Shown here: positions 33,801 to 56,974 of the stretch, piece after piece
Numbering within the stretch: the stretch's first letter is position 1
How the letters are laid out: the number at the start of each line of letters is the position of its first letter
Origin: Geosiphon pyriformis uo1
Lineage: Eukaryota > Fungi > Glomeromycota
Assembly: GCA_016748015.1 (NCBI GenBank)
Contig: JAAOMT010000602.1
Span: forward strand, 1,501,696-1,565,695
Direction of reading: 5' to 3'
DNA: 64,000 nucleotides
Notes under the pieces: model-generated
The model's input: only the letters and a program-made list of their open reading frames with translations
Told to the model about the DNA's origin: nothing
Database searches by the model: none
Made by a program: the position numbers and the translations under genes

Positions 33801-35180
33801 TTTTTTTTACTATTTTTTTGTATGTTTTTTTCTATGAGTAATAATATTAAATATGAGAATTAGCATTAAAATACATAATTTCTTAACATCCACAATAATT
33901 GAATTATAGACTGTTGCTCTGTTTTTGAAAAATGTCTTATCTTTTTATATAATAACTTTATATATAGATAATTAAGCTGTTATTAATATGTGTACTTTTA
34001 AGACTGGATTTAATACACTGAATTTTTGTAATTAATATTAAATAGAGAAAAGACTTATTAATAATCTGATAAAAAACAAGAATTTTACTGTCAGATGAAT
34101 TAAGATTAAAAACTATTTGAATATTTTGGACAATATTAAAACAGATTGAATATTAAGTAAGACTATAAACTCTTCCTTATTTTTGCCAAATAGAATTTAT
34201 AAATGTTTTATTGTGGTCAAAAACATGGCTGTTTTTGGCTTTGTTTGTTACTTCATTTATAATGTATATAAGTCTATATATTATGCTTATTAAAAAAATA
34301 GTCTTGGCTAAAATATGGTTTTAGGTAAATTAATTTAAAAGATAAATTAGTCATCTATTATAAAAATATAACATTTTAATTTAAATATGTTTTTTGGTTT
34401 TATGAATAAAAAATCTTCCAATCTGCATATATATTAATAAAAACTGTACATGAATACTTGTTTATAATAGTCAAAAAGAGACTATATAATTAAAATATTA
34501 TGTTTGTTATATGAAAAGATAGAATTTTTAAATCATGTTTTTATCTGTTCTAAGAATATTGTTATTTGTGAAGAGATTTTGACTAAGCTTTTTGGCATCT
34601 GAGTTTATTTAGTAGGTGTCTGTACTTTTTTTTCTTCTGTTATATTAAAAACTCTTTTTTGATATTTAGTTAATATAAATTTATATGCTTTAATTTGTAA
34701 AAAATTTGTGCTAAAAAAATGGTATTTGAAAGCTATCATGGTTTTTGTTAACAGAAAGAAAGCTTTAAATATTGTGGTTGTTTTTATGAGACAGTTAGTA
34801 AAATTTTATTATTTAAAGATTTGGCTTATTAAATTAAAGTTTAAAGTAAATATAAAGAAAGTGAGTTTAATAAGTAATAAAAGTATAAAGTCTGGTCTGG
34901 CTGTTAGCTTGGTAGCTAGTTTATTAAATAATGTGATTTATCTTTTGAAGTTTATTAAATTATTTGCTATTAGTTTTGGTAAACACAAACTGTATTTGTT
35001 TTTTTCTGACTTGAGTAATAATATAAAAGTTTATATAAATATATAGTATTATTTTGTCTGGCCTAAGTGAATAATTACATATAGAAAGCATATAAGTTGT
35101 ATTTAGTTTAAGCTTCTTAGTTTAATTCTATGTATTAAATAGCAATTAGATTTTACTTATTAAAATAAATAAATAAAAAA
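30850..35180 (+). mobile_element. Second, more decayed 5'-truncated LINE (RT-RNaseH-3' UTR)
   Basis: IALIKTAKKIF, LQNIHKIYD, HKYLSIF, decayed RNase H. 3' UTR matches 9266-9410. Confidence 0.8.
32998..33843 (-). mobile_element. Solo LTR of the element C family inserted in the LINE RNase H region
   Basis: Colinear with the other LTR copies. TSD acat (32994-32997) / atat (33844-33847). Confidence 0.85.
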
Positions 35181-38090
35181 TATAATTTAAAAAATTTTAA
35201 ACAGATTTAGATCAAAATAAAATAGTTTTTATAGTGGTTTTTTAATTATTAAAGATATTTTTAAAAAATTATTTTAATTATTAATTATTGAATTTGCAAA
35301 TTTTTATAAAATATCTTAAAATTTTTTGTTTATTTATATATATAGTTTAAGATAAAAAAAATGGAAATTATTATTTTAATTATAATTTAATAAAGATTTA
35401 TTTAAATAATATAAATTTTTAAATATATATAGTTTAATATTAAATAAATGTTTATTTAAAATAGTTTTATTAAAAAAATAAATGAGTTTATTTTTAACTA
35501 TTTTTTAAAGATAAAAAAAATTAATTATAAAATATATTACAAATATTTTTTTAATTTTTTATATATAAATAATTAATAAAAAATTCCATTTTTTAAAAAA
35601 AAAAGTTATAAATAAAAAAATTATCATATTATTTTTATTAATTATATAACTAATAATTATTAAACTTTAATAAAAATTTAATTATATATTATTAAGAAAC
35701 TAATAAATAAGTTTGATAATATTTGATATTATTTATTAAAATAATAAAATATTTTTTAAAAAAATTTTATTTAGATTTCCATTTTTTTTGTTTTAGACTG
35801 TATATTTAAATATTAGATTTATAAATAACTTTTAAAAATTTTTTTAAATTGTAATACTTTTTTTATTAATAGTTTATTTATTATATTTTAATATAAAATT
35901 AATATTTTTATAGTAAATATTTTAAACTTTATTATATTTCAAATATTTAAATTAATTAAAAAATTTAGTATTATATTTGTAAATTAATTATTAAATTAGT
36001 ATTATTTTAAGAAAACAGTTTTTATTTAATTTAAATTAATATTAAAATTTGATAAATTAAATAACTTAATTAAAATATTAATTATAGTATATGATTTAAA
36101 TTTTTGAATTATACGAAATTTTTGTGATTTTTTTTTAATTAAATTTGAATTAAAAAATATGTGTTTAAATAAAATTAAAATATTTATTAATAATTCTATT
36201 AAAAAATTGAATTTTTTTAATATAGCTAAAGATATATTAATTTATTTTTTGAATATAAATTAGATGTTAAAATTTATAATATTATATTTTTTATTTTTGC
36301 TAAATTACAAATAACTATATTAATGTTTAAATTTATTTTAATAATAAATATTATTATTAATACAAATAATTAAAGAGTATTAAATATATATAAAATAGAA
36401 TTTAATTTGTTTTAATCTAATATTTATAATAAATATTTAATTAATAATATTAATATTAAATTATCTTATTATTAATTTTTAGATTTTACAGATTTTTAAT
36501 AATATTAATATTTAATTATCTTTATATAATTATAGTAAAAAGTTTTTTAATACTCAAACATAATTTAAAACTTATTAATTTTATTTATAGTTTGGTTATT
36601 AATTTTAAAAAACTTATTTAGTTATCAAATTTTAACCTTAGAATAAAATATAAAAAAAATTTATTAATTAGTAATAATTTTGATATGTAGTTTAATAATT
36701 TTTGAATTTGAAAATTTTATTTGCAAAAAAGTTTATATATAGTTTGTTAATAAATTTTAATTTTATAATAAGTTTGTAATTTATTTTTAATAAAATTTGT
36801 AAAACTTTTAAAGCTATTAGTGTATTTTTTTAAATAATATATAATATAATTTTAATTAATTTAATTAACTAATTACATATAATTAAAACATAAATTATAA
36901 TATTATAATAAGTATTAGTTAAATTATACTTATTAAATAAAATAAAATAATTTTATGTTTAAAAACTTGTAAATAATAGTTTTAATAGATTTATTGTTAA
37001 ATTAATATAATTTATTACTTTTAAAAAGTGCAAAATTTATGGTTTTTGTTAAAATAAATTAATAAAACTTAATTAAAAACAAATAAAACAAAATTACCAA
37101 TAAAAAAAGTTGTATATATAATTATTAATAAATTGTAATATAATACAAAAACAATATTAAGTTTACAAGTTATAATATAAATAAAAAAATAATAATAAAT
37201 AACCAAAAAATTATTTAATTATAAAAATTATAAAAATAATTAAATAAAAAAATAATTAAAAAAAATTACATATTAAAAATAATAATATAATTCGAAATAA
37301 GAATATATTAAATAATAAAAATAATAAAACTAAATAATAGTAAGAATTTTTAAATAAATAAAAAATTTTTAATGACTAATTTTTAAAAAAATTCTCAAAA
37401 ACTGTAAATAACAAATATTATATAAATATTAAATTAATTAAAATATTTTTAACAATTATTATAATTACAAATATTAACAAAAAAAAATGTTATTTATTTT
37501 TAATTTAATTTATAATTATATAAAAATTAAACATCTAATAATATTTGTGTAATAATTAGCAATTTTAATTAAAAAAAAATTATTTTTTTAAAATTTATAA
37601 TTATAATCAGAACTAAAAATAAAAATCTACTTTTTTTATAATAATTAAAGAAAACAACAATCTAAAAGCTTTTTTAATGGTTTTTACCATTAAAATAAAC
37701 ATTGTAAAGCAGCTAAAATTCAAGTAAAAATTAACATAAAATCATCTCTTTAATTATTATTATTAATTAATATATATTATTGTTTTATATTTTGATTTTA
37801 CAAATTTTTATCTTTGTAAAATTGTGTATTAAATAATGTATTCTAAATTTTATATGTTTTAAAATTATCACATTAATAGTTTTGTAGTTAATATTTGTGT
37901 TAATATTTGAAAATTTTTTTATAAGTAATTACTATGTTGTTTATATACAATATTTTTGGATTATTTTTTTTCATTTTTTTCAAAACAGAAAAAATTTGAT
38001 TATGACAAAGCATCAAAAAAGTAAATTAGAGATCAATTGTTTTTTAAAATTAAGTTTACATAAAAATTTATTGCAATATATTTAAATAAT
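35181..38090. other. Extremely AT-rich desert upstream of the gene island
   Basis: Almost no G+C and no credible ORF. Confidence 0.6.
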
Positions 38091-38386: not shown

Positions 38387-40416
38387 TTAAATTCCTTGAA
38401 CCACCCTTGGCCATTCTTGACGAATACGTTCAAATAATTCAGGTTTAGTTCGTCTTAATGCATCAGGTTGCTCAGCAAGTGCCACAAAGGTAGTTGTCAC
38501 GCCTGAGTCAATCGCATCAGTAACTACAATCTTTTAAAGCAGTTCGTAAAGTATTGAATCAGTGAAATTTTGAGGCAAAGAAGCTCATTTTTGATGAAAA
38601 GACATACCGTCATCATCAAACCAAGCAAGAAACATACAAGAACAAGGACAAGTATGCGCGTGGTGTCGAATCCTGAGGTGAAGATTTTTATATATGCATA
38701 ACCAAACAGAGCGCATAGAACTCCGATGAAGATGGCGCCCATTGCAAGCACATTTCCTATAAGGTTATCGTTGATGATGGCTTCTACACCTCGATCTTTG
38801 ATCAATGTCCAAGTATCCTTGGCAGCTTCGCAGTAAGACTTGCCGAAAATGGCAACTTCGAGATTATGCAATAGTTAACTTAAATGATTCTTATAGAAAT
38901 AAAATTATCAATATAATAATGCCTTGACCTACCTTCCACATAAGCATAATGATTGAAATATTCGACCAGGCCTTCTATGCATGACAATATATAAGCGAAG
39001 CAACATGCCAAGAATCCCAAGGCCCCATCATCACTGTTGGCAATCGTTCGGAATATTGCCCTTAAAGTGTTTAAGAGGGCAATGATCAGACTACCAAAGC
39101 AAATAGAACCAAGTGACGTAGTGCAAGCGCGCTTAAGTGAGCTCAAAGTGGGGGCAGAGCCAGTTCCTTGAGGAGTGCCTTCAAGGAAATAATATGCAGC
39201 ATAGACACCAGCATCGGTAACGTGAACAATTGTTTTTATGACCTGACTTGTCCAGTAGAAATTGAATAACAAATAAATCATTACAAAGTACAAGTTGTTA
39301 TTTTTGCAACTGATCTTCCCATTCTCGGTTGACTTGCAATCTCCTCGCTTATAGAACAATTGATACCTAAAAGGAATAAATCAATTTAGCTTTAAGTTTA
39401 AAATTTAGAAGACGAATAATATTTTTACATACGATCCAACCGCGGCGAAGGCCCACCAGATCGACCAGCCTACTTGGAATACCAAACCGACGAATCCCAT
39501 CACAATAGTGCCATAATATTTTTTCGTTATACTAGTGACTGTTTCTAACATAATGGCAGCAAATGGAATTCTATGTCTCCAACTCCATGCACAAATAAGA
39601 TAAATTACACCAAAAATTGCAAATATAATGGCCTAGAAAATTGAAACGATAATCAGTATTTCGGAGGTATTATAAAGACTTATTTATAAAGAGCTTACTA
39701 AAACAAATTGACGAGCAAGCCCATAAATGATAGCTGCGATAAAATAGGTGGCGATCGAAAGCCATAAAGTAACTTTGATAAGGGGTTTAGGAAAGCGTTG
39801 CATCAGTAGCATATAAATTAGGCTCAAGAAAAATCCAAAGACCAGAGAAAGGACCAACAACACGATGGATTTGGAATCCAGGTCAATATTGGTTTTACTA
39901 TCATTGGATGAACGATCATTTATAAATTCTTTGATTCCAAAATAACTTAGGGTTATAAAGCCAGCAAATTGAATTGCATATAGTATGAGGGCCCATAAAT
40001 CTAGAAAAAGAAATGAAATCTGTTAAAATTTTGGACAAAGGATGTTTATCATGAGATTTAAACCAATCGAGAATATACAATATTTTCGAACAATATTTTA
40101 CATAAATATTCTAAGAGCTTAAAAAAAGGCTGGGATTATCAACAAAGAATGAGGATTTTCCTTTTCAGCATATTCTCAATTAACTCATAATAATATCTTT
40201 CTCAACTCTTTTTGGATTTCACTCACCTTGATACTTTGGCCTAGGATTCCATTTCTCAGCTACTGGATTTGTGGTTTGCCCTTGTTCATAACTAGGAGGT
40301 TGATAACCAGGAACAGGAGCATATGAGGTTGCTTCTGGGGGAGGATAATATTGTTGTTGTGGGGGAGGAGGATAGTACTGTTGCTGTGGTGGTGGTGGAT
40401 AATATTGTTGACTCAT
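38387..40416 (-). CDS. PNS1: Choline transporter-like (CTL/Pns1 family) membrane protein, 6 exons
   Basis: Exons 40416-40227, 40000-39699, 39632-39433, 39366-38933, 38855-38608, 38530-38387 with GT-AG introns joining in frame. Motifs PKYQDLWA, TTSLGSICFGSL, YFNHYAYVEVAIFGKSY, IDSGVTTTFVALAE. P/Q/Y-rich N-terminus. Confidence 0.92.
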
Positions 40417-40952
40417 ATTGCAAAGAAATGTATTTTTGTCTTCTTATTATACAAAGGGAGCGATACCAAAAATCAAGCAAATAAAATATCGATTTGGGTT
40501 GTAAAGTTTTTTCTTGATTTAGAACTCAATTGGGGCTTTTTATCTTCTCGGAGACAAACAAAAAAAACCCGAGTTTGGATACGAAGGAGAAAAATTGCTA
40601 AAAAGCCACAAATCTCTTGGGCATTTTATCAACCACTATGATGGACCTCATGATTGGCCACAAATTTTAAGGATTAGTTACACTTGTGCCAAAATAAAAT
40701 CTAAATATGTGCATAATATTTATCGACTATTGATAAGCCCGAAGGAAAGGTGGGCTTGGACGATGAAATGTGGGGTTTTTATATTTTGATTCGTCACTTC
40801 AAACGCGTTACGTAAGTCTTTTTGCTTTTATTTGGAAAGTAAAAAAAAATACAATATATACACTAATTACAAAATTGCGAAATGAAAGGTTATATGAATC
40901 GAACTAAAATAACTAACCATTATTTTGGTCAATTGGATAAATTGTCTCAATT

Positions 40953-41984
40953 TTAAACTTGGGCACTCCCTCTTATCCTTACACTTTTTGCTTTTCCTCT
41001 ATTACTCCGAACAGGACCATTGGAAGTTGATTGAGTACCGGTAAGTTTTGTTATACGGGCTTTTCCCAACTGCCGTCCGTATTTTATGGCACGATAAAGC
41101 AATGCTTCATGAGCCTTTTCAGTCTCTGTTTTTTTGAGATAATTTAGACTTGTTCTTATGTACCATCGATCAATGTCTTGTTCAGAAACATGTGTCCAAA
41201 GTGATAATAAGTATCTCTGTTTCTTGTCAGGTTTACGAAGGTTGTTGTCGAGCAAATATTTAATCAACCATAAAGTCGTTTCTGGGTCAATTCGATCACG
41301 CGTCTTTTTTAAATCTTTCTTCAATTCCTTTCGAAAATTCTCAGAAGGGATTCGAAGGAGATTTATAGTGGTTTCCGCAAATCTACTATGGGAACCCACC
41401 AATTCATCAATAATTTCGTTTTGTTGATTACAAAGTTCGATAATTTTTTCTGAAAGACTGCTCATAATAGCAAGAATCTCAAAATCCAATTGTGTTTTAC
41501 CTCCCTTGGGAATTAGAAGATCCATTTCATCTGTAAGTTTCAACAAGTTGGATAAAAATTTTGAAACATTCACTGAAGTATAAAAATTGTCTCGAAAATT
41601 AAGCAACTCCATCAGTATGGGAAAAAGTGGGTGGCTTCCAAATCGTTCGTTATAGAGTCTTAAATTTTCAATTATTTGAGTTTCTTTTTGGTCTGGGAGC
41701 TTCCTAGCTGTAAAGCTATTCAAATTAGAGTTTCCTGCAGAGGATTTTTTCCTATTATCCTCTACAAAATGTTCGGTTGTCACTTTGGAAGAAGCACTTA
41801 GAAATGAAATAGTTGTATTTATTGGTTTTTCTTTTAACCCACTTTGTAAATGGTTTTTATGGAGTGATTCGTAAGAAATGCTTGCATTCCCTAGCTCGAA
41901 GAAAGTTAGATCCAAAGTTGGGCTCAAAGAATCTCCTAAAGGGCGTGGATTGTGGAAGCGGGTTATGCGTTTGTTTTCTTCCAT
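40953..41984 (-). CDS. HD1-like atypical homeodomain protein of the putative MAT locus
   Basis: Intact 343 aa ORF with a degenerate homeodomain at aa ~226-283 (IDPETTLWLIKYL...PDKKQRYLLS...DIDRWYIR). Head-to-head with HD2. Confidence 0.8.
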   Translation of the reverse strand: MEENKRITRFHNPRPLGDSLSPTLDLTFFELGNASISYESLHKNHLQSGLKEKPINTTISFLSASSKVTTEHFVEDNRKKSSAGNSNLNSFTARKLPDQKETQIIENLRLYNERFGSHPLFPILMELLNFRDNFYTSVNVSKFLSNLLKLTDEMDLLIPKGGKTQLDFEILAIMSSLSEKIIELCNQQNEIIDELVGSHSRFAETTINLLRIPSENFRKELKKDLKKTRDRIDPETTLWLIKYLLDNNLRKPDKKQRYLLSLWTHVSEQDIDRWYIRTSLNYLKKTETEKAHEALLYRAIKYGRQLGKARITKLTGTQSTSNGPVRSNRGKAKSVRIRGSAQV

Positions 41985-42448: not shown

Positions 42449-43906
42449 ATGGAATTAATTCAACAAAAAGTTGTCGCATACAACCACATAAGAGAACACT
42501 TTTTGAAGATCAAACAAGCTGTCTCTGACTCTAGCTTTAATGATGAAACTATTTTAAAAAACCCACTTCGCATTCAATTATTTAGGCATCACGGTTATCA
42601 ACTTGAGTCTTTTACGAACGAGATTAATTTTCTAAACCTTTTTCAAAAATACCTTGTTGATCAAACTATCTTCACTTTAATTTCTACTGATTTTGAGCAC
42701 CCTGACATAAGTGAAAGCTATGAAAAAGTCAACATTCAAGCAAAATATTTTGAGGCAGTAAATAAACTTCGTCAATACATTGAACAGACTTGTCTTGAAC
42801 GCAAAATTGATGCATTAAAAAACTATTTCATTATTCCCTTTGGAAATATCGCCCATTTGCAAACAATTATGATTAAAATAGAGCAAGTCTTTATTAATTT
42901 GTTCTTAGAAACACTATCGGAATATCGGAATACCATACGCTTTCAATTTTCTGAATTATTAATTATAAAAAGACCTTTAACAATTCCACACACAGCCTCA
43001 GGCCGCTTCAGTAATGAAACCAAACAAATCATGGAAGAATACTTTGTAGAAAGAAACGACCGACCTGATGCTAAAGAAAAGCAAGATTTGAGCGGCCAAA
43101 CAGGTTTAACTATAAAACAAATCGAGACTTGGTTCAACAACCGAAGAAGTCGTTCTCTTAAAGATGATACCTGCGACAAAGATACGATAGGATTTATGAA
43201 CAAAGAAATAGATTGGGATAATAAATTCTTCAAAATTGAAAAAGAAGCTGGACAAATCATTGAAAGAAAGGAAATTGCATCCTGCGATCTAACTTATTAT
43301 GATGCGTCTGGAATAACCACCATTGACGTCACTCCTTCACAATTACCCATATCATCATTAGTACCATTTTCTTCCAAAAATGGCCTCAATCTCCGACTAA
43401 ACTTAAAAAAAGAGGCACATAGAATAAAAAGTGCACCATATTCAAAATCATTTTTTTCACGAGCTGAAAAGAACTTGGCCAACAAAAACGCCTCTGAAAT
43501 TTATCAATCCGATTTGATTAAACAACAGTTAAATATCACAAAAAATAATACAGTGTCTAAAAGTTCCGGTTGCGTAATTGAAACAAAATCGCTTGAAAAA
43601 TCAGGCATTGACCAAGTTCAAGAAACATATTCAATCCTTGATAATTCGCTTACTTGGACGCGAGAAAAAATTTACCCAACCTTTAATAATTCGCTGACAT
43701 TCGTTCCCATCAGTAATTTAAAAGTTTCACACCACCCCAATAAAGTCACAGCAAGTTCATTTGCAGAACCTTATGGATCCTCTCCTAATTTTCCCAGAAG
43801 GTTAGTAGAGCAAACACCAACATACAATCCTGAATATTCCGAAATCGGTTCACAAACCACTGAACTTCTTATTTCTCCTCTCACGTACAAACCCCCTATC
43901 AATTAA
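42449..43906 (+). CDS. HD2 homeodomain transcription factor of the putative MAT locus
   Basis: Intact 485 aa ORF with a homeodomain at aa ~180-240 (RFSNETKQIMEEYF...GLTIKQIETWFNNRRSR), helical N-terminus and S/T/P-rich C-terminus. Confidence 0.9.
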   Translation: MELIQQKVVAYNHIREHFLKIKQAVSDSSFNDETILKNPLRIQLFRHHGYQLESFTNEINFLNLFQKYLVDQTIFTLISTDFEHPDISESYEKVNIQAKYFEAVNKLRQYIEQTCLERKIDALKNYFIIPFGNIAHLQTIMIKIEQVFINLFLETLSEYRNTIRFQFSELLIIKRPLTIPHTASGRFSNETKQIMEEYFVERNDRPDAKEKQDLSGQTGLTIKQIETWFNNRRSRSLKDDTCDKDTIGFMNKEIDWDNKFFKIEKEAGQIIERKEIASCDLTYYDASGITTIDVTPSQLPISSLVPFSSKNGLNLRLNLKKEAHRIKSAPYSKSFFSRAEKNLANKNASEIYQSDLIKQQLNITKNNTVSKSSGCVIETKSLEKSGIDQVQETYSILDNSLTWTREKIYPTFNNSLTFVPISNLKVSHHPNKVTASSFAEPYGSSPNFPRRLVEQTPTYNPEYSEIGSQTTELLISPLTYKPPIN

Positions 43907-44229
43907 TCTTTTAATCCTTTTATCCCAAATATCTTCAAATGAGTTTATCACCAAATGGCCAACGTAAAGGTTTATAAAGTTGCCCAGGATTTCGCCTCTA
44001 AATGGTTATTTACCTCACTATAATCTCATATTCGAAAAACTGCATTGAGAATTCCTAGTAGAGAATCAAAATTTTTGTTGGTACATACATATTTTCCTGG
44101 ACATTCGCAATGATCGTGATGACAATTTTTTATCATGGAAAATCCACGTGAAATTATGAGATTATCGAATATTAAAATCAAAGTTAAAAATTTTTTCTCA
44201 ATAAACTTTATTCACGAGGAAATATCATT

Positions 44230-45282
44230 ATGTTAAAAACTATTTTCTTCACACGAGTATGTTCTTTGCATCTTTTATTCACGGCATAATTTCAAGGATC
44301 ATTTTTCTCTGAACACAAATATGCATAAGTTTATCAGGTTCACACTAACTGCTTGGCTGCTCATTAGCATGGTCATCGTGCAGACTGGATAACCCCAGAC
44401 GACGAAGATGTTGTGTATCCCACAGGCCTCAACTGGGACCCTCCCCTCTCTCGGCACGGCTGTGAACAAGCCAAAGAACTTGCTCAATACTTTGTTGATA
44501 ACAATATTAAGATCGATCGAATTTTTTCCAGTCCATATTTTCGAACTTTGCAAACTGCAAACGCAGTTGCCGAGGCTTTAGATATCGATATTTGCGTTGA
44601 AGATGGTCTGAGGTTTGATGAAAATCCAATAATATTACTTATCTGTTCAAATTTAGAGCAAAAATTATATTAAATCAGTTTGGATTTGATTTTCAATAAT
44701 TTCAAATTACTTATAATATCAATTTGGGCTTATTTCCAAGTTTTTAACATAAAAATAATTTAAATACCTTCTCTTTGTAGTGAATGGTATGGCCTTCATC
44801 GAATATTTATACCAAGTGCTGCCCCCATATCAGAACTTGAACTATTTTTCCCTCGAATCAATACTTCTCATACTTCACTTGTTCAACATCCGAGTGTTAG
44901 TGAAACCATTCAAGATATACATGGGCGTCTTTCAACCACCATGCGCAAATTAATCGCACTATCTGATGTAGATCCTAAAATCAACACTGTTTTAATAGTG
45001 ACCCATGCGGCATCCTTGATAGCCGGGGTCAGAGCTGTTTTAGAGGAAAGATACGCTTCTATTGGTAGCGCCACATGTTCATTAACGGAGCTGATAAGAA
45101 GAAATGAAAAATGGGTGATGTTACGTAACGGAGATACTTCATTTATGTCCAGTGGGCAAGAAAAAAATTGGACCTTTACAGAACCGAATGTGACTAATGA
45201 TGAAATTGAGATAAAAGGCACACTACCAGCTACCATGGAAGACGAAAAAGGACAAATAAAAAAAAGTACACATCTGCTCTAA
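44230..45282 (+). CDS. Phosphoglycerate mutase-like (histidine phosphatase superfamily) protein, 3 exons
   Basis: Exons 44230-44256, 44368-44612, 44781-45282. Catalytic R|HG split by intron 1. DPPLS..G, IFSSPYFRTLQTA, LIVTHAA. Confidence 0.9.
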
Positions 45283-46549
45283 GAAAAATCCTGTCTTGTA
45301 TTTTATCATTTCTCAGCCTTAAAATATATATCATTAGCTGCTATGAAAGGCGATCCTAAGAATAATGCGAGGAAGACAGGAACAAAATTCATTGTTTGTT
45401 TTTAAGAATTTGACATATATCTACATATTTTTAAACCGGTATTCGCTATTGTTTCTTATTATAATAAGTGCAAATCTGTAATCCTACATGTAAAGAAACA
45501 AAATTAAGCTTCTTTTTTGTTTTTTACTGTGTGATTGGTATCAATTTATAAAATTAGTAACAAATTTTAGTTGAATAAAATTTATTTTCTGTTTTAATGT
45601 ATGAATAAATCTAATTTATAAATTATTGTTCTTAAAATGTTATTAATTAAATTATCCATATATTAAATTTAAAAAATTTTACTGAAATATAAAGATTGCA
45701 AAGTTAATTTATATAAACTTGTTTTTTAAAAAATATAAAATAATATTTGTTTAAATTATAATTAACAAAAATTTAATTATTTTTTAAATTAAAACAATTT
45801 AAATTAATTACCAGATTTATTTTACAATTATATTTAGTTAAATTTTAATCTTAAAAACTATTTATTGCAAATATTATATTTTTTTTATTTTTTATTTTAT
45901 TTTACAAAGACAACTTAATTATTGTTTACTATAATACAGCAAAAAAATACTCTAAATAGATATAACTTATGTTTTATTTATATATAACCAATTATTTAAG
46001 CCAATTAAATCACATTATACAATAAACTATTTGTTTTAAAAGCATTACAAAATTTATTTGAAACATTAACTTATTATTTAATTAAAATACATTAATAAAT
46101 TATAAATAAAATTATTTTTGTAAACAAAAATTCTAAATTTAATAATTATTAAGTCATAAATATTAGATAATTATTTTTTAGTATTAGACTTTTTTTTATA
46201 TTTTATATTGAATTTAAAATTTGATAACTAAATATAATTCTTATATTTAATAATAAAAATTTATAATATATTAAACAGTTTTAATAGTTAATTCAAAAAT
46301 CAAAAAAAATTTTCAATATTAATTCTTAAAAATAAATTTCTTGATTACAATTATATATAAATAATTTAACATAATATTATTATTAAAAACTTATATAATT
46401 TAAAATTATTTATTTATTATATTTAAATTATATAATTTTTTATATAAAATTACTAAAAATTATCTGTAAATAATTTTATTAAATATATATATAAATTAAC
46501 TATAATATAATTTATTAAACCAAATTTTATGTAATTATTAAAATATCAA

Positions 46550-49500
46550 ACTAAGTTTATTTAATAAACAAAGTTTAAACTTTATTTAATACAATATATT
46601 AATAAAATAATTTAAATTAGATATAAATTACATACTTACTATATGTAATCAACTATTTAAGTCAGTTAAAACAACACTATAGATCTATTTTAATTAAAAC
46701 ATTATTAATATTACCTAAAAAAACACACATAATTTATAAATTTCAAAATAAATACTTAAGTTTTTTATAATTCTAAACAATTTTATAATTTTAATTAAAA
46801 GTTATGATTCAAGTCTACAAATAACAAAAAACATAAAATTATCTTAAATATTAAATTATTCTTTTTTATAAAAGCTCTAAGTTTTAAATATGCCAATTAA
46901 ATTTTATTTCTGTAAGCTATTTTTATTATTTAAACAAATTTTACAATCTTATTACTAGTTATTTTAGTATAATTAAAAATTAAAAGAAAATTTAAATATC
47001 AATTTCTAAAAACAAAACTTTTATTTAGAGTTATATATAAATTAATATTGTTTATATATAAAAAAAAATAACTATAAAATAGCCAAAAACAATTAACATA
47101 AACTTAACATAAAAGTTTAAAAAGCTATTATTATTACTATAATATTATAATTTTAAGTATTATTATTAAACATTAATAATATTATAACATAAATCTTAAT
47201 ATTAATTATATAAATTTATTTAAAAAATAATAATTAAATTTATATTTAAGGTATAAAAAACAAATTATATTATCAAAAACCAATCAAACTATTTTATTAA
47301 AGTTACACTAAAATTTTTCAATTAGTTATTAAAAAAGTATTATTTTTAAATGTTTATTTTAAAAAATAAATATAAAAAAAATTATTAAAGAGTTATAAAA
47401 TAGTAAACATAAATTAAAATAATATTATTTAGATATTTAACAAATATATTTTATAAAATATTTTATTATATTACTATATTTATTTGAAATAAAAGCATAA
47501 TAAAATTATTTCTTTTATAATATATTTAAAAAATAATATAATTAAAAAAACTTGCTTATAATAAAAATAAATATATATGAAATAAAAAATATATATTTAG
47601 AACAAAAATGAAAAAAAATGAAAAAAATCTACTATTTATAATAAAACTACAATAAAAAATTGGTTCAATATAAATTAATACTTTTTTTAACTTATAAAAA
47701 ACTGTATATATAATTAAATTATTTAAGATTTATATATTATATTAATACTATTTTAATTATATCAATTATTTATATATATTAAATTAATTAATTTACTTTA
47801 AGTTTATTTAGCATATTAATTTTTTAAAAACTAATAATTTAGATAATCAGATTTTAAATAGCTAAATTTTAAAACTTTAATTATATATTAATAATACTAA
47901 TTACAATATAATTAAAAACATATTAATTAATTAAATTTTTAAAAATTATTTTTAAATAATAATTACAAATTTGAAATATTAGATTGTTTAAATAAGACAT
48001 ATAAAAATTTGAAGCATAATAAAATTTGTTATTATTAAATTACATGTATTAATTTTAAATTTTCATTAATATTTTTTAATTTTTCCAAAATATTTTTGTA
48101 TTTAATTTAGTTTTTAATTAAATTGTAATTAAATTGATTGTTAATTTCTTATTTTTTTATTGTCAATTAATATTTGTTAAATTAATATATTAGTAATATC
48201 ATATATAAATTCAAAATTTTTTTAAAATTTCAATATTTCTACTATATAAAAATAAATATTCAAAAAACTCAATCTTATCACAATAAAAACACAAGACATT
48301 ATAATTACATTTATTATAAAATCACTTCTAAACAATAATTAACAAATATTAATTTAAAAATTTCATATAATATAAATGTAGTTTTACAATAAATTTACTT
48401 ATGTAACTTAAAATCATATATAAATTAAAATACTAAACCAAAAACAATTTATTTCAATTAATATCTTCTATTAAATTTTCTATAATTATATTAATATTAA
48501 AACAAATTTTTTAATAAGTTTAATTTATAATTTTAGAAACATTTTAAACAAATAATATATATTGTTCAAAACAATTATACTAATTGCTTTGATATATTTT
48601 TTATAAATATGAACAGAAAACATAAAACCAAACTAAAAAGCAGTATCAATTAGTATATTAGTTTTTATATTATTTAAAATACTAATATAATTTTTAATCT
48701 TTAATTAAATAATATCAAAACTTTTATTTTTTATAATATTTACAATATAATATTTTTTTAATTAACAATAACTATAAAAATTTGACAAATTTAAACTTAG
48801 TTTAAAAAAAACAAAGTTTAAAACAATCTGGTTATTAAGATATATTATTATTAAACTAGAAATAAAAATATATTTTAAAACTAAAACAACTGCTTACAAT
48901 TTTATAAGTGTTAAAAAAAGCAAATTATCTATTTTGATTCTAATATTCAAATTTATATTAACAAAAAATACAATAATTGTTTTTCTTATTTTTAATAAAC
49001 CAAAATATTTTAAAGACTTATTTATATAAACATTAATAATATATAAATTAATACTAATAAAACTTTTTTTACTAAAAAACTTATTAAAACTAGTTCTATT
49101 AAAAGAATATAAACTACCAACTAAGAAAATATGATATAATAAATAATAAAATAACCCAAAAACACAATAGCCAATTTAAATTAATTAGAAACAAAGTCTT
49201 TAAAATCAAGTTTTTCTTAATAATAAAAGCTTTTTCAATTAAATACTGTATTGTTTTTGGTAAAAAGCTGTTTTACAAAAATAACACCAAATCTTTTAAG
49301 TAAACATAAAACATTAAAAAATATAAAACTTTTTAAAATAACAAAGATTAAAGTATTTTTAAAGAAATAAAACATAAAAAGCAAATTATTCTTAAGAGAA
49401 AAATCAAAATTTTAGAATAATTTTACAATTTTAACCAAAAAATTGTTTCTAAAATTGATTTTTAAATTAACAAAAAACTATAATAGATAATTGAAAAACC

Positions 49501-49800
49501 AACTTAAAACTTGTAAATTCAAAAATTTATAATTAACAGTTAATTAAAAATATTATTAACATTTAAAAACAATACAATTAAAACAATTTTATATTCTGTT
49601 TGTACTTGCTTAAAAGTTTTTAATTTATATAAAAAAAAGTAATAAACAGTTTTATTTAAAAAAATTTTTGATAGGCCAGATTTTATTTTTTAATTTTTTT
49701 TAATTATTTATAAAAATGTTATTTAACAAAAAAAACAACTTGTAATATTTAAAATATATTAAAATATAGTTTAATTATTTTCAATTTAAATTGTGTTGTT
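46550..49800 (-). mobile_element. Fossil LINE sequence inside AT desert
   Basis: Minus strand near 49690-49570 reads KSGLSKIFLNKTVYYFFLYKLKTFKQVQTEYK (compare KFGLLLDFSNDTIHHSSLYDLKTFEQIQAKSK at ~28670). LINE-type 3' UTR at ~46550-46680. Continuity between the two parts not established. Confidence 0.6.
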
Positions 49801-52800
49801 AATAAAAACACTTATTGTAAAAAAAAGTCAAGCCAATTTGTTTTTTAATCTTGTTAATCTTAATAATAAACTTTGTTTAAGTTTAATTATTAAAAATTAT
49901 GTTATATTATTAACTAATTTTTTTAATAATTTTTGTACTTATAATTAAAAACATTATTAAAAAATAACAATCTTACTTATTAAACCATTTTTTTAATTAA
50001 TCTTGAATATTTTGTCTTTTTTTATAATATTTTTTTGTTATAACATATATTATTTAATAAAAAGTCTCTAAACAATATTATAAAAGTTTAATAGTATTTA
50101 TAATTTTATAAAAAATTAAATTTTATACATATTTAAAATTATATATAACTGTTTTTTTTGTTTACTTAAATTTATTAAAATAATCTTATATCTTATTTTG
50201 AAAATTATATTTATTAAAATATTAATATTTAGATTATTTGAATTATTAAATTTTATTATTTCAAATTTTAAATCTTTAGTAATATTAGATAATAAATTTA
50301 TTTTGATAAGTTAGAAAATAGAATTGTTATATATATATAGTTTTATATATTTCTTTAAATGATTATTAAACTTAAACAAATTTGTAAATTTCAAACCAGA
50401 TCTAAATTAAATTCGGACTTGTTAAAAAAATTTAACTTTAAATTTAAATTAAGCTTACTTTAAAAATTTGGTTTGGTTTAAGTTTAATTTATAATTTAAA
50501 CTAAACTTAAACAATATTACAAAATTGTTTTTTTGATATATTATTTATTAATATTTTTATTTTATTATAATAAGTTTTTTATAAGTTTTTAATTCTATTT
50601 ATGTAAAATATTAATATTATGCTAAATATTTTTTTGTTAATATTATAATGTAAACTATTTTTTAATTCTTAATTATTGTATATATTTATGTATTTTTTCT
50701 TAAAAGCTAATTTAAAATCTATTTATAATAATAAAATATTTTCTAAAGCTATTTTTGCAATTGTTTAATGTGTTTTTCTAATTTAAAAACATAGAATATT
50801 AATATTTTTTAGTGCTTTTTTTAATTTTTACAATAGAATTTTTATTAATTAATAATAATTTTAATAATTTAAATAATTTTGATTAGAGATTATTTATCTA
50901 AAAAATTTAATTAATTAATAATAGTTTTATTTAATAAATAAAACAAGTAAATTTTTAATGTTTTAATTATAATACTTTAGTTTTTAATATTATTTCTTAT
51001 TTTTTTTTGATTTAAAGATTTTTTTAAAGATTTATTTAAAAGTAAAAATTAAAAGATAATTAAAGTAAAAGATTGAATTATTGGAATTATTAACTTGTTT
51101 TTTTTTAATATTAAAATTACTATATATATATATGTTTATAGTTTTATAAAAAAACATATTATAATACTTTTTTTTTAATAATTTAATATAATACTTATCA
51201 TTATTATAAAATAGTATTTGCTGTTATTATAATTTTTTACTAAATTTTTAAATTATAACAACAGTATTTAAAGTTTAGTTTAGTTTTATTTATCAAATAA
51301 TTTTATCAAATATTAAAAAACTTTGTTTTTTTAAACCTATTTTATAATTAGATTTAGCCAATCAAATTTAGCCAATCAGATTTTAGTTTTATAATTAACA
51401 ATAATATTTTTAACAAAATTTATTATTGTTAAAAAGTATATAAGCTTTAAATAATCAGTCTTTAAATATAATATTTTTATATAAAACTATATATAAAACA
51501 TTATTATAAATACTTAACAAAAGTAAATATAATATTAAAAATATAGAACTATAAAAAAATAATTACAAATTATCAAATTATACTAAATTTAAAAATCATA
51601 AAATAAATTTTGATTTGAATTCCAATACAACTACTTTAATATTTAACAATAAAGATAAAATTTTAAAGTTATAAAAATTCATTAAAATTAAAATCACTAA
51701 TAATAATTAAAAATTTGGATCCTTATTTAATTATTAAAAATTTAATAAAATATCTGTCTATATTACTTTTAGTTAATTTATAACTTATTTACAATTCTAA
51801 AAAATCTTTAAAAATTCTTAATACCAAAAAAAACAATTTAAATCTAACAAATATTCTTAATATTTAATATTAATTTTTAATAATAATGTTATTTTTTTTA
51901 TTTACAAAGTACAAGTAGTTAAATATTTTATAGATTTTAGATAATGATTTTTTAGTTAGTATTATAACTTAAAATTTTTTAGATGTATTTGAAAAAAAAG
52001 TTAGTAAATTATTAATTAAACTAATAATTAATGTTTATAAAAACAAAAATAAAGACCTAAAAATTATTAAAGCTGTTTTACTCAAATTAATAATATATAT
52101 ATTAAAATTGATATAAAAGTATTCAAAATTCAAAATTATATTATAATATTAAAAATAAATAATTAAAAAAAACCAAAACTTTTTTTAATTACAAGTTTGT
52201 AAACTTATAATTTGTAATAATTAAATATTAATACTAAACAATATTTTTTATAATAGCTTAATAATAACAACAACAATAATAAAACAACAATAATAAAACA
52301 ACAATAATAATAATTTTAAAATTTTAAAAACTTTAAAAAAAAACAAAATTAGTCTTTACTATTATCAATAATAATAAAAAACTTTTAAACAATATGTAAA
52401 AAAACAATAAAAAGTTAGTAATCAATAAAAAATTTAAATATTGCCTATATTATAATATGCTTTGAAAAATATTTAAACAATAATTAGAGAAAAAAATTAT
52501 TAGTAATATGATTTTTATGCTCAAAGTTAATATAACTACTTTTTTTATTTTTTAAGTAATAAATAAATATTATGTTTGATTTTTTTTTAACATTAAAAAC
52601 CAATTAAGTTAATTTAATGAAAAAATTAAGATTGTACAAAAAAAAAGTACCTAAAATTCAATTATTAATTATTAAGCAATCTAGTAAAAAAACTAAAAAA
52701 TTAATATTAAAAATTTATTAATAAAAAATAAACTAATAATATTAAAAAAAATATTCTGAATGAATAAATTTTATTTAATATGTAATTAAAACCAAAAATA

Positions 52801-52849
52801 TCCAATTTATTTATTTGAAATCTTATTAATTAAATTGTTAAAATAATAA

Positions 52850-53900
52850 ATTTATTAAAAAAAAATAGATTGTATAAAAAACTTAAATTTATATAAAAAA
52901 CTTAAAATAAATAGATATTTTTAATTGTAATAATATTTTAAAAAAAATTCAATAATTTTGTATTAATAACTATCAATTAAATACATTATTAAATAAAATA
53001 TATATTTACTTTCAAAATTAACAACATTTTTAATTATTTAAAAATTCAATTTATTTTACAATAATTAATTTAACTATTGAAGCTTGGCAAATAAAAATAG
53101 ATTTTGTCAACAAAAAAAACTGTTTTTATTACAAAATATAGAACTTATAAATTTATTATAATGTTTTTTAAATTAATAAATAAAGTATTTAAATCAGAAC
53201 ATTAGAAGTTATTTTCTGTATATTTTAAAGATATAATTATATATTCAAAAACTAGGAATAAATATTTAAATTACTTTTAAAAAGTTTTTAATCTTTTTAA
53301 AAATATTAAACTTAAAATTAATCTAATTAAATCATTTTTTAAATAATAATCTACCTAGTTTTTAGATTATCTTATAACAAAAAATAAGATTAATTCAAAA
53401 TAAAAAAATTGTAAAAACTTAAATAATTAATGAATATTTTCAAGTTATAATTTTTTTAAATTAGCTTTTTATAATTAAATATTTTTTTAAAATTACATAT
53501 CTATTTAATTAATTTTTAAGAAAAAATTTTAATTATTATTAACCAAAAAACATTTAAAACTTTCAAAGAAAAACTTTTTATTAAGTCTATTTTAAAACAA
53601 CCCAATTTTAACAACTTATTTATTTTTTAATTTAATGTTTTTTTTAATATTATTTTGTTTTAAAAAAAAAAACATATTATAGTCTATAATAGTAAAATTT
53701 TTTAACAAACAAAAAAAAATTACACAATTACTAAAAAATATATTTTATGTTATAATCTTTTGAATATTAGTATAAATATTTTTTTTAAAAAATTTAATGT
53801 TTATATTAAAACTTAAGTCTTAATTTAATTAAAAAACAAAAGAAAACTAAATTATATATTTAAATAAATATAATTAAAACATTAAATATTACAAAAAAAC
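52850..53900 (+). mobile_element. Fossil Gypsy RT-RNase H
   Basis: YFTIINLTIEAWQIK...TVFITKYRTYKFIIMFFKLIN, VYFKDIIIYSKT, ILKQPNF, KHIIVYNSK, KNYTIT: AT-shifted versions of canonical RT/RH motifs. Confidence 0.7.
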
Positions 53901-55277
53901 AGATTAGGAATAGTTAATTATATTATTTATTAGTAATTTATTTTAAATTAAACATGATAATAAACTTAAAAAACTATTAATATTTATTAAAATATAATTA
54001 ATAAAAAGAAAATATTTGTACAAATAATTAAATTTTTATTTAATTTACCAAAACCAATTATATTGTTATAATTAAAACTTTTTTTTTAGCTTTTGTTTTA
54101 TTTAGCTATAATTAGTTATATATATTAGTTATTAATATTATTAACTAATTATTCTAATTATAGAATTAGTTATTAATATAATTATTGATTTAATTAATAA
54201 CTTAGTTATTAACTTAATTAATAACTGAATCATTAATATAACTATTAATCTGATTATTAATTTTTTTTAAAAAATATATAAACAAAACTTTTTAAAACAA
54301 TAAAAAAGTATTTATATTCAAATTATATTTAAATTAATTTTTTTTACTATTTATTTATTTTTTTAATTTGTATAATTATTAGTTTTTGTAAAGTATATTA
54401 AATAAATATTTATTAAAAAATACAATTAATATCTGATATTGAATTTTAAAAATAGTAATATAAGACATAAAATTATATTAATATGTTATTTTTTGTATAC
54501 AATATAAATTATTTTTTTATTTTCAAACTTTTTGTTACTTTTTGAAAAGAATAACAACTAAAATATTTATAAGACTAATTTTGTATATTGAATTTTTACT
54601 AATTTAATTTGCTTATTAAAGTTAAATTATCTTTTAATTATTTTTATTGTTATATAATACTGTTTTTTATTTATTTATTAATGTATTATATCTAACTATA
54701 ATAATATGTTATTCAAATTTGTAACAATATTATAAAAACATAAAACAGAAACAAAATCAAATATAACAAAAAATATTGTAATTTTAAAAAATTAGCAAGC
54801 TTAATGTAATTTTAATATTTTTTAATAATCAATATTAAACTAATAAAAATATATAAAATAAAACCAGATTTATTTTAAACTGATTTAATTTTTACAGTTT
54901 TATTAAATTTTAAAATTAGAAATTATAATAGTTTTTAAATATTATTACAAATAATAATATTTTCAAAAAACCATTTTTTTAAATATTTTAAAAAAATTAA
55001 TAACAATTATTTTTAAAAAAAAGTTGTTTTTTGTTTTTTTTGCTATTTAAATAGTAATAAAAAAATTGTTAAAAAAATAACAGCTTGGTTATTAACTTGT
55101 TATTAAAGATTTTAAAACTTTTAATATTGATAAAAAAATTAGATTAAAATTAATTTTATTTGTTACTAAAAGAAACTTTAAATAAAAAAACTTTTTTTTA
55201 AAGCCAAAAAAAATCTTTTATTAATAGTTAAAAACTGTTTTTTATTTTTAATATTTTAAAAAATGCTGTTTTATTGT

Positions 55278-55388
55278 ATTTTTTTATTTTTTTATTTATT
55301 TAACGAGTAAGACCCAACCACCACTTAATACAATACATCAAACTAAGTGATCTAAACTAGACGCGAATCACGCATTTTTCTACATTGT
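55278..55388 (-). mobile_element. Short LINE 3'-end fragment with A-rich tail
   Basis: Reverse complement matches the LINE 3' UTR at 30640-30750 and retains CpGs. Confidence 0.75.
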
Positions 55389-56974
55389 TTTTATTTCCAA
55401 AAAAACTATTAACTACAATAAAAAAGAGCTGTTTTTTTATTTTTTATTTTAAGTATAATTAAAAAATTATAAAAGAAAAAAGTTTTAATATTAAGTAAAT
55501 ATTTTTTAAAATATTATTATAAAATATAATTTAATTAATATTTTCTTATTTATAATGTATAAATCTTTTATTAAATACAAATTATTATTTTTTTAAATAT
55601 AACTAATTATTTAAATAATTACAACATATTATTATTATTAAAAACACTTTATTTAAAATTTATAATTAACTAAAATTTTAAATAAATTAAATATTATTAA
55701 AATATTTTAGTATTATATTTAAAAAATATTTACTGTTAAATACTATTTAAAAATAGTAATTGATTTTATTAAAATTCAATTATTATTAAAAACAAATTAG
55801 TAGTTTATATACATATTGTTATTAAATAAAATTTAACAAAAACTAATTAATAATTATTATCCTTAATAATTACTTTTATATAATAAAACAATAATTAAAT
55901 TAATTAAAAAAAATACATAGTATTTAGAACAGAAAAATTATTATTACTACAGATTAATTTTTAGAAAAAAATTTTTTTTAATTAAATTTTATAAAACAAA
56001 ATTCGTAAAGAAAAACAATTAAAATTTAACTAATATAAAAAAGCATTTTTTAGTTTTATAAAAAAAACTATGTAATTACATTTTTAGTTTAACAAAATTT
56101 TAACAAATAAATTTTCAAGGTTTTTAATCAGTTTACTAAAAAAAAATTTTATATTCAATAAAAATTCTTTAAAGTATTCATAATAATATATAATATCTTT
56201 ATAGATAATACCTGCAATGAAAATAATTGTTTAATTAAATATAAATTTTATTTTTACATGATTTTTAAAAAAATTTGTAGCTGTTTGGAAAAATATTACA
56301 GGTTTTAATGTATTTAATAATTTTTTTAAAATAGACTAATAATAATAAACTAAATTTTCTGAATTGTTTTTGTTTTTAAAATACTTAACTAATAAATAAA
56401 TCAATATATATATTATAAATTACAATTTTTCTTTTTTTTAATTTTATAACAATAAAAATCTACCCAGTTTTTTTTATATAATTGACTTTAGTATTGCCAA
56501 TATCAATTCAATTTAAGTTGATTATAAAACAGAATACTTGTCAAAAAAATTATTTGCAAGTTTGTTATAAATTGGAAACTTCTTGTTAAGTATAATTTTT
56601 GTTTAAAATTACCTTTGGTATTGGTGTTACATGATTCTGACTCACAAGATATTAAAAAAAATAGTTTTTGAATTATAAAAATATTTTTAAAATCTGGTTT
56701 TCCATCTAAAAAATGCATGTAGAGTTTTCATAAAATTTTGCAAAAAGATTTTTGCTATTAAATAATAAAAGACTGAAAGGTTGCAGGTAACAAAAATTTT
56801 TCTAAACTTCACATTTAGAAATGTACTTTTGATTTCAAATATTCAATTTCTAAGTTGATTGTTCACAGGTAAATGTAAAATCTTTCACACATCATTTCAT
56901 CTATTGAATAATTCAATGATAATTTCAGAATGTGGACAAAAAACCAACGCTAAAAGATCATGCCTGCTATCTAA

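Follow-up and report, generated by a model that had tools for sequence, protein, structure and literature searches.

It has not been settled whether the homeodomain heterodimers of the haploid-to-diploid transition have a single origin or several (PMC6219170; PMC6368402). Fungi form a gap in the idea of a single origin: MEINOX and PBC domains have been reported absent from them and their HD2 proteins have been classed as non-TALE. The question raised by the putative MAT locus of arbuscular mycorrhizal fungi (AMF), with its homeodomain genes HD1-like and HD2, is from what kind of ancestor this pair descends. Both halves of a MEINOX-PBC dimer side by side at this locus would close the gap and make a single origin testable.

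The locus and its genes

The window analysed here is a stretch of 64,000 nucleotides from Geosiphon pyriformis uo1 (contig JAAOMT010000602.1, GCA_016748015.1). It harbours a choline transporter gene, HD1-like, the divergent HD2 and a phosphoglycerate mutase gene, in this order:

38387..40416, minus strand, choline-transporter-like gene (PF04515), flanking marker
40953..41984, minus strand, HD1-like gene, a single ORF of 343 aa
41985..42448, no strand, divergent intergenic region of 464 bp from the HD1-like start codon to the HD2 start codon
42449..43906, plus strand, HD2 gene, a single ORF of 485 aa, head to head with HD1-like
43955..45282, plus strand, phosphoglycerate-mutase-like gene (PF00300), flanking marker

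In order and orientation all four genes agree with the putative MAT locus published for AMF, and there is no difference in gene content. The HD1-like protein of the window shares 24-43% identity with named HD1-like proteins. Orthologs carrying this name are found in Glomus, Rhizophagus, Gigaspora, Diversispora and Paraglomus, and the closest relatives of the window protein are those of Ambispora. The gene order is kept in Ambispora, Glomus, Paraglomus and Rhizophagus, and on the transporter side in Diversispora; the head-to-head arrangement of HD1-like and HD2 spans Paraglomus to Rhizophagus. Dikaryons carry two alleles of the locus each. The mating role of the AMF locus is disputed, and its diversity has been held to speak against a sexual role (PMC11414155). 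The present analysis concerns a known locus with a domain identity that is probably new: an assignment of MEINOX or PBC domains to fungal mating proteins was not found in the openly accessible literature.

In Gigaspora rosea no HD2 was seen within 5 kb of HD1-like, nor was one seen in the 2.3 kb examined upstream of HD1-like in Acaulospora morrowiae (L125/L127 loci). Both Ambispora species harbour a second HD1-like gene (L001:4599-5426; proteins P0002 and P0003), which in A. gerdemannii lies off the locus with no HD2 called near it. In Ambispora leptoticha a second homeodomain gene starts ~5 kb downstream of HD1-like (L130:10656-10819), past the transporter gene and a PX-domain gene. Within the window the four-gene block is an island of 35% GC amid very AT-rich tracts, possibly decayed repeats, with 9-15% GC at 34000-38000 and 46000-56000 on either side. 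The start of the transporter gene (40340-40416, minus strand) holds a short repeated tract rich in Gln, Tyr and Pro.

Public RNA data revealed a transcript antisense to HD1-like:

40887..41763, plus strand, spliced antisense transcript with exons 40887-41040 and 41231-41763 and a 190-nt intron at 41041-41230

It is represented by one contig of depth 22 from one public run, which skips 41041-41230. The canonical donor, the pyrimidine tract and the acceptor of this intron all lie on the plus strand, and an adapter-plus-G loose end at 40887 may mark the start of the RNA. The antisense RNA looks non-coding; the longest stop-free stretch in exon 2 comprises 64 codons when the exons are read separately. 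An intron within the HD1-like sense gene was rejected as an explanation, as orthologs align across the ORF and the splice sites are on the opposite strand. Most orthologous loci show no evident counterpart of the antisense donor and acceptor. In the one run with signal, the recognition helix of HD1-like is covered by no contig.

The N-terminal domain and homeodomain of HD1-like

The first-pass annotation of the window had noticed two motifs in HD1-like, ~48 aa apart and upstream of a homeodomain with Ile at position 50, and had taken them as remains of a MEINOX domain of the MEIS/KNOX type. The motifs proved to be correctly placed, as did the homeodomain downstream of them, which was located at aa 225-284 by its fold:

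41355..41684, minus strand, MEINOX-like domain (aa 101-210), in AlphaFold models a short helix followed by a three-helix bundle with a long last helix
41601..41636, minus strand, KN-A / HR1-like motif (aa 117-128), from sequence, PREP1 positions, hhalign and a register test
41514..41567, minus strand, middle helix (aa 140-157), from AlphaFold models
41433..41489, minus strand, KN-B / HR2-like motif (aa 166-184), from sequence, PREP1 positions and a register test, with the invariant C185 next to it
41133..41312, minus strand, degenerate TALE-like homeodomain (aa 225-284) with a two-residue loop insert and I50, with R51 for N51 and without R53
41043..41123, minus strand, conserved helix past the homeodomain (aa 288-314), from AlphaFold, 94% identical among Rhizophagus

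Twenty-seven HD1-like proteins were compared; every one with a named source is from Glomeromycotina. The comparison showed a conserved helical domain of ~105 aa around both motifs, and AlphaFold modelled this domain alone with a pLDDT of 86. The first motif is conserved at L127 (25/27), L124 (24/27), P122 (22/27) and H118 (18/27) and less so at P119 (10/27), with an aromatic residue at position 121 in 22 proteins (Tyr in 20, Phe in 2). In the second motif D167 (22/27), E183 (21/27) and L166 (19/27) are conserved, followed by C185, and positions 174, 177, 181 and 184 are hydrophobic in 85-100% of the orthologs. Taken literally, the proposed HPLFP and LD...L...EL motifs persist only in part among the orthologs. 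The two motifs are 48-49 aa apart in the window protein, and P122 and D167 are separated by 41-48 aa in the orthologs. Among Rhizophagus proteins the MEINOX-like helices are 76-82% identical, the tail of the long helix 43% and the homeodomain 95%.

Animal MEINOX domains bind PBC through their HR1 and HR2 helices, and this binding drives nuclear entry; PREP1 residues L63, L66, L67, L70, I122, L125, L129 and L132 are needed for binding to PBX1 (PMC7545097). By spacing, L120, I123, L124 and L127 of the HR1-like motif fall on PREP1 L63, L66, L67 and L70, and M174, L177, I181 and L184 of the HR2-like motif on I122, L125, L129 and L132. These eight positions are hydrophobic in 78-100% of the 27 orthologs, which is partly expected of any amphipathic helix. 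The structure of MEINOX has not been solved, and PREP1 MEINOX is predicted to consist of a helix H1 and a short bundle H2-H4 with a long H4, without a match in the PDB (bioRxiv 10.64898/2026.02.16.706105). The helix layout of the HD1-like domain matches this prediction. PDB searches by sequence and structure with the N-terminal domain of HD1-like found generic or designed helical bundles only, in keeping with the lack of a PDB match for PREP1 MEINOX, and an Atlas shape search gave unrelated bacterial and viral rows only.

For comparison with plants, 120 plant and algal loci were collected by a scan for the KNOX recognition-helix pattern and confirmed by Pfam, their exons being treated singly and never joined. 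The HD1-like profile aligned with KN-A in 30 KNOX pieces over 17 columns (hhalign P=9e-5, probability 60%), and 24 of these pieces scored best in one and the same register. KN-B gave P=0.35. Whole KNOX MEINOX regions scored 25.8, compared to 9.5 +/- 1.9 in 200 column shuffles; the first motif carries this signal, and the hhalign signal spans 10-17 columns only. When aligned over the full length with KNOX, the second motif has its Leu-Asp and its Glu-Leu paired as well, and the distance between the motifs, 48 aa in HD1-like, is 49-50 aa in KNOX proteins of three land plants' loci. For both MEIS motifs cited in the first-pass annotation, the proposed register gave the highest score (P=0.0016 and 0.034 with full shuffles, P=0.013 and 0.043 with shuffles that keep the hydrophobic pattern), values that are optimistic because the motifs had been chosen for their likeness after the HD1-like protein was seen. 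Taken by itself, the MEIS1 10-mer given in PMC7545097 did not reach a significant register score. Shuffling in seven-column blocks was rejected as a null, as it often leaves the His-Pro-x-Tyr-Pro motif whole.

Pfam searches yielded no match to Meis_PKNOX_N in any of the 27 orthologs. This blank is weak evidence, because out of ten true KNOX proteins nine missed this profile too and the tenth reached only E=0.24; several true algal KNOX proteins likewise fell below the Pfam cut-off. KNOX2 and Mating_N (PF12731) gave no match above noise with single HD1-like proteins, trimmed domains or orthologs, and KNOX1 gave a signal in a single ortholog only, spanning 10 residues (E=0.09-0.17). An ELK domain was not matched by Pfam in HD1-like. 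Used on six-frame ORFs of the 120 KNOX loci, the HD1-like family HMM had non-coding junk as top matches and failed to separate KNOX exons from 16,864 decoy ORFs.

Sequence comparisons and fold models together make it likely that the N-terminal domain of HD1-like is homologous to MEINOX. The KN-A match, the motif spacing, the helix layout and the interface positions speak for the original assignment; the comparison of KN-B with KNOX and the Meis_PKNOX_N search did not lend it support. It has to be weighed against the possibility that both N-terminal domains of the pair are fungal inventions, of the Mating_N type in HD1-like and a counterpart in HD2, which dimerise as in basidiomycete HD1/HD2. 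The likeness to MEIS/KNOX would then be due to chance or convergence, amounting to a helix-capping His-Pro-x-Tyr-Pro and amphipathic helices. A feature search of the Atlas with aa 100-215 matched only one cluster, of basidiomycete HD1 carrying Mating_N (PF12731), at a score of 0.76, a lead only, the lead threshold being 0.9. This match cannot separate the two readings, as Mating_N might be a MEINOX domain that has drifted. The poor conservation of P119, the absence of a KNOX match for KN-B and an almost invariant Arg in place of the MEIS/KNOX cysteine after motif A also fit a fungal invention; the Pfam blank is shared with true KNOX proteins. Homology to MEINOX and PBC was reported in Apusozoa, Ichthyosporea and choanoflagellates and neither domain in fungi, where bE/bW were called non-TALE, but the genome table of that study holds two chytrids for fungi (Joo et al. 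2018). Moreover, chance would have to yield both halves of a dimer, each upstream of a fitting homeodomain. An origin of both domains within fungi is considered unlikely.

The model of the HD1-like homeodomain has a homeodomain fold (VIA Z 9.2-9.6 to homeodomains), with Exd, TGIF1 and PBX1 as top Foldseek rows, and in the Atlas the complete protein has Homeobox_KN clusters as its neighbours. By sequence, TALE domains are no nearer to it than PRD-class domains. Positions 20 and 26 enclose seven residues in each of the 27 orthologs (standard homeodomains have five, TALE eight), and PYP was found in the loop of none of them. Helix 3 reads W48-Y49-I50-R51-T52, in which W48 (26/27), I50 (24/27) and R51 (26/27) are conserved; N51 is missing from all 27 proteins and R53 from 25, position 53 being mostly Met or Asn, losses on which the first-pass annotation was silent. 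The first-pass annotation had regarded WFIN with Ile50 as a mark of MEIS/KNOX. This did not hold: Ile50 also occurs in TGIF, in BELL and in the majority of fungal TALE proteins, and it was rejected as class evidence because it occurs in most TALE classes. The homeodomain is 95% identical in Rhizophagus and is therefore under strong constraint for something beyond canonical base reading. The helix that follows it, with L295, R298, A299 and Q305 invariant, may be a partner-binding tail like that of PBX or yeast alpha2.

Two deviating proteins may be mentioned here. HD1-like of Entrophospora candida (P0014) has lost W48, I50 and R51 and has the most degenerate recognition helix of the family. The second HD1-like copies of Ambispora have the most KNOX-like first motif in the set, but Lys at position 50.

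HD2 as the expected partner

If HD1-like carries a MEINOX domain, its partner HD2 is expected to carry a PBC domain. Eight HD2 orthologs were aligned, and two regions are of interest in the window protein:

42458..42949, plus strand, PBC-like domain of HD2 (aa 4-167), PBC-A-like at aa 4-69 and PBC-B-like at aa 98-167, from hand alignment
42986..43168, plus strand, PBX-like homeodomain of HD2 (aa 180-240), N51 and R53 intact, with a one-residue loop insert

Among single homeodomains of the PDB, all eight Exd/PBX1 sequences ranked first with the HD2 profile (38.8-40.6 bits), followed by SIX1 (37.8), Paired (35.5), MATa1 (34.2) and MEIS (about 30 bits); DUX4 came above PBX solely by summing two domains. 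The lead of PBX is 3-5 bits. The ranking was unchanged with the window HD2 alone, and the lead vanished with Rhizophagus HD2 alone (27.4 vs 27.2). In helices 2-3, Glomus HD2 (L126) shares 17/26 and the window HD2 15/26 residues with Capsaspora PBX, hand counts without an E-value, part of this identity being common to all TALE proteins. One extra loop residue is present in the window and Ambispora proteins (Archaeosporales), and six of the eight orthologs have a loop of standard length. All eight have N50 and not G50; Capsaspora PBX likewise lacks G50 (PMC6219170 Fig. S14).

The N-terminal domain was aligned by hand with PBX1, using the residues and peptides in PMC7545097 and the machine-read text of the alignment in PMC6219170 Fig. 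S14. The anchors are collinear. In PBC-A, PBX1 I43/L46/I50/I53 correspond to HD2 residues 11/14/18/21, and M73, K74, L77 and F78 to L40, R41, L44 and F45; PBX1 L105/L108/L112 correspond to F61/L64/L69. In PBC-B, L154/I157/R158 correspond to V104/L107/R108 and P191 to P130; furthermore, I197/V201/I204 correspond to L137/M141/I144. F240 of PBX1 corresponds to F187 of HD2. Invariant columns in the eight orthologs include I14, R41, F45, F61, L64, L123, P130 and I144. Over PBC-B, Rhizophagus HD2 (L129) is identical to PBX1 at 12/38 positions with three gaps, a hand count that has no E-value. Pfam PBC (PF03792) matched neither HD2 proteins nor trimmed domains, and the HD2 N-terminal domain gave no significant match to KNOX or HD1-like profiles (best E=0.07).

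Judged from these alignments, HD2 probably carries a PBC domain. Alternatively, only HD1-like is derived from MEINOX, and HD2 belongs to the ordinary non-TALE homeodomain proteins and has a dimerisation domain of fungal origin, its PBX likeness being a coincidence of helical pattern; HD1-like would then be an old MEIS-type protein whose partner was replaced. The standard loop of most orthologs, the Pfam blank and small bit margin for PBX, and the classification of HD2 in the literature as a classical 60-aa homeodomain agree with a replaced partner. However, the anchors in PBC-A and in PBC-B coincide with columns that are invariant in HD2, suitably spaced from a homeodomain for which PBX is the top rank, and Archaeosporales HD2 retain one extra loop residue. 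Replacement of the partner is regarded as quite unlikely. Independently of one another, the two proteins each point to one half of a single known dimer.

Origin of the pair and comparison with known systems

The HD1-like/HD2 pair may be explained by descent from an ancestral MEINOX-PBC (TALE) heterodimer, as one inherited dimer, and we consider this descent fairly probable. HD1-like would stem from the MEIS/KNOX partner and would have kept the MEINOX domain, with a homeodomain that degenerated. HD2 would stem from the PBX partner, with its PBC domain kept and the three-residue loop mostly or wholly lost. The descent of HD1-like from the MEIS/KNOX class, which the first-pass annotation had put forward, has gained independent support from the PBX-like HD2, although the MEINOX homology is likely and not proven. 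The present analysis establishes sequence, conservation, synteny, the predicted HD1-like fold and the PBX affinity of the HD2 homeodomain. From these we infer the homology of the N-terminal domains, dimerisation, nuclear import, DNA binding and any mating role.

By analogy with the animal proteins, the HR1-/HR2-like helices of HD1-like may dock on the PBC helices of HD2, and the dimer may enter the nucleus. DNA would be bound mainly through the intact recognition helix of HD2, which has kept N51 and R53, and the HD1-like homeodomain with its following helix may provide a second DNA contact or a protein surface. It is proposed that pairing is governed by differences between alleles in the N-terminal domains and that the dimer therefore reports the meeting of two different nuclei. 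Variation in Rhizophagus is concentrated in the putative dimerisation region of HD1-like. The residues mapped by PREP1 mutagenesis offer the AMF field a concrete interface for probing allele discrimination by HD1-like/HD2, which bears on the question of sex in AMF.

It is also conceivable, but very unlikely, that the ancestry holds for HD2 only, or that the homology holds and the pair is no allele-discriminating mating switch, forming a constitutive dimer or serving separate vegetative roles. This would agree with the diversity argument of PMC11414155, with the separation of HD1-like from HD2 in Gigaspora, in Acaulospora and for one of the Ambispora copies, and with the antisense RNA run in which the recognition helix is left uncovered. 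The synteny from Paraglomus to Rhizophagus, the two alleles in dikaryons and the concentration of variation in the dimerisation region favour the proposed switch.

Basidiomycete HD1/HD2 (Mating_N, PF12731) are, as in AMF, a divergent pair with a TALE-like HD1 whose recognition motif is poorly conserved. Partner choice and dimerisation of these proteins have been reported to proceed via N-terminal helical domains of ~110-120 and 130-150 aa, sizes similar to those of the AMF pair. Pfam Mating_N is matched by 0/27 HD1-like orthologs, however, and the flanking genes differ. A tentative extension, for which the chances seem slightly short of even, is that the whole fungal HD1/HD2 system (AMF, basidiomycete HD1/HD2, bE/bW and yeast alpha2/a1) descends from the MEINOX-PBC dimer, the 'non-TALE' HD2 being a PBX without the loop extension. 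If so, the AMF pair would be its least eroded form, and one ancestral switch detecting cell fusion would be common to fungi, algae and plants and redeployed as MEIS-PBX in animals.

KNOX-BELL/GLX (Chlamydomonas GSM1-GSP1) has the KN-A motif and the A-to-B spacing in common with HD1-like, and its heterodimer is regarded as a signal that two nuclei have united, as proposed for AMF. Unlike KNOX, HD1-like has no significant match at KN-B and no ELK match. In algae each gamete gives one partner, whereas in AMF each nucleus has both genes.

Compared to MEIS/PREP, HD1-like has a two-residue loop insert, lacks PYP, N51 and R53, and has Arg for the cysteine after motif A. HD2 differs from PBX by zero or one inserted residue, N50 for G50, a PBC-B that is ~10 residues shorter and the lack of an alanine-rich linker. 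Furthermore, the AMF genes are adjacent and multi-allelic. Animal MEIS/PREP-PBX (MEINOX, i.e. HR1 and HR2, PF16493; PBC, PF03792) nevertheless resembles HD1-like in motif order, spacing, helix layout and hydrophobic interface positions, and in both systems the partner has a PBX-like homeodomain and PBC-like helices. If the proposed descent is correct, fungal mating control would be tied to the same ancient protein pair as MEIS-PBX in animals and KNOX-BELL in plants.
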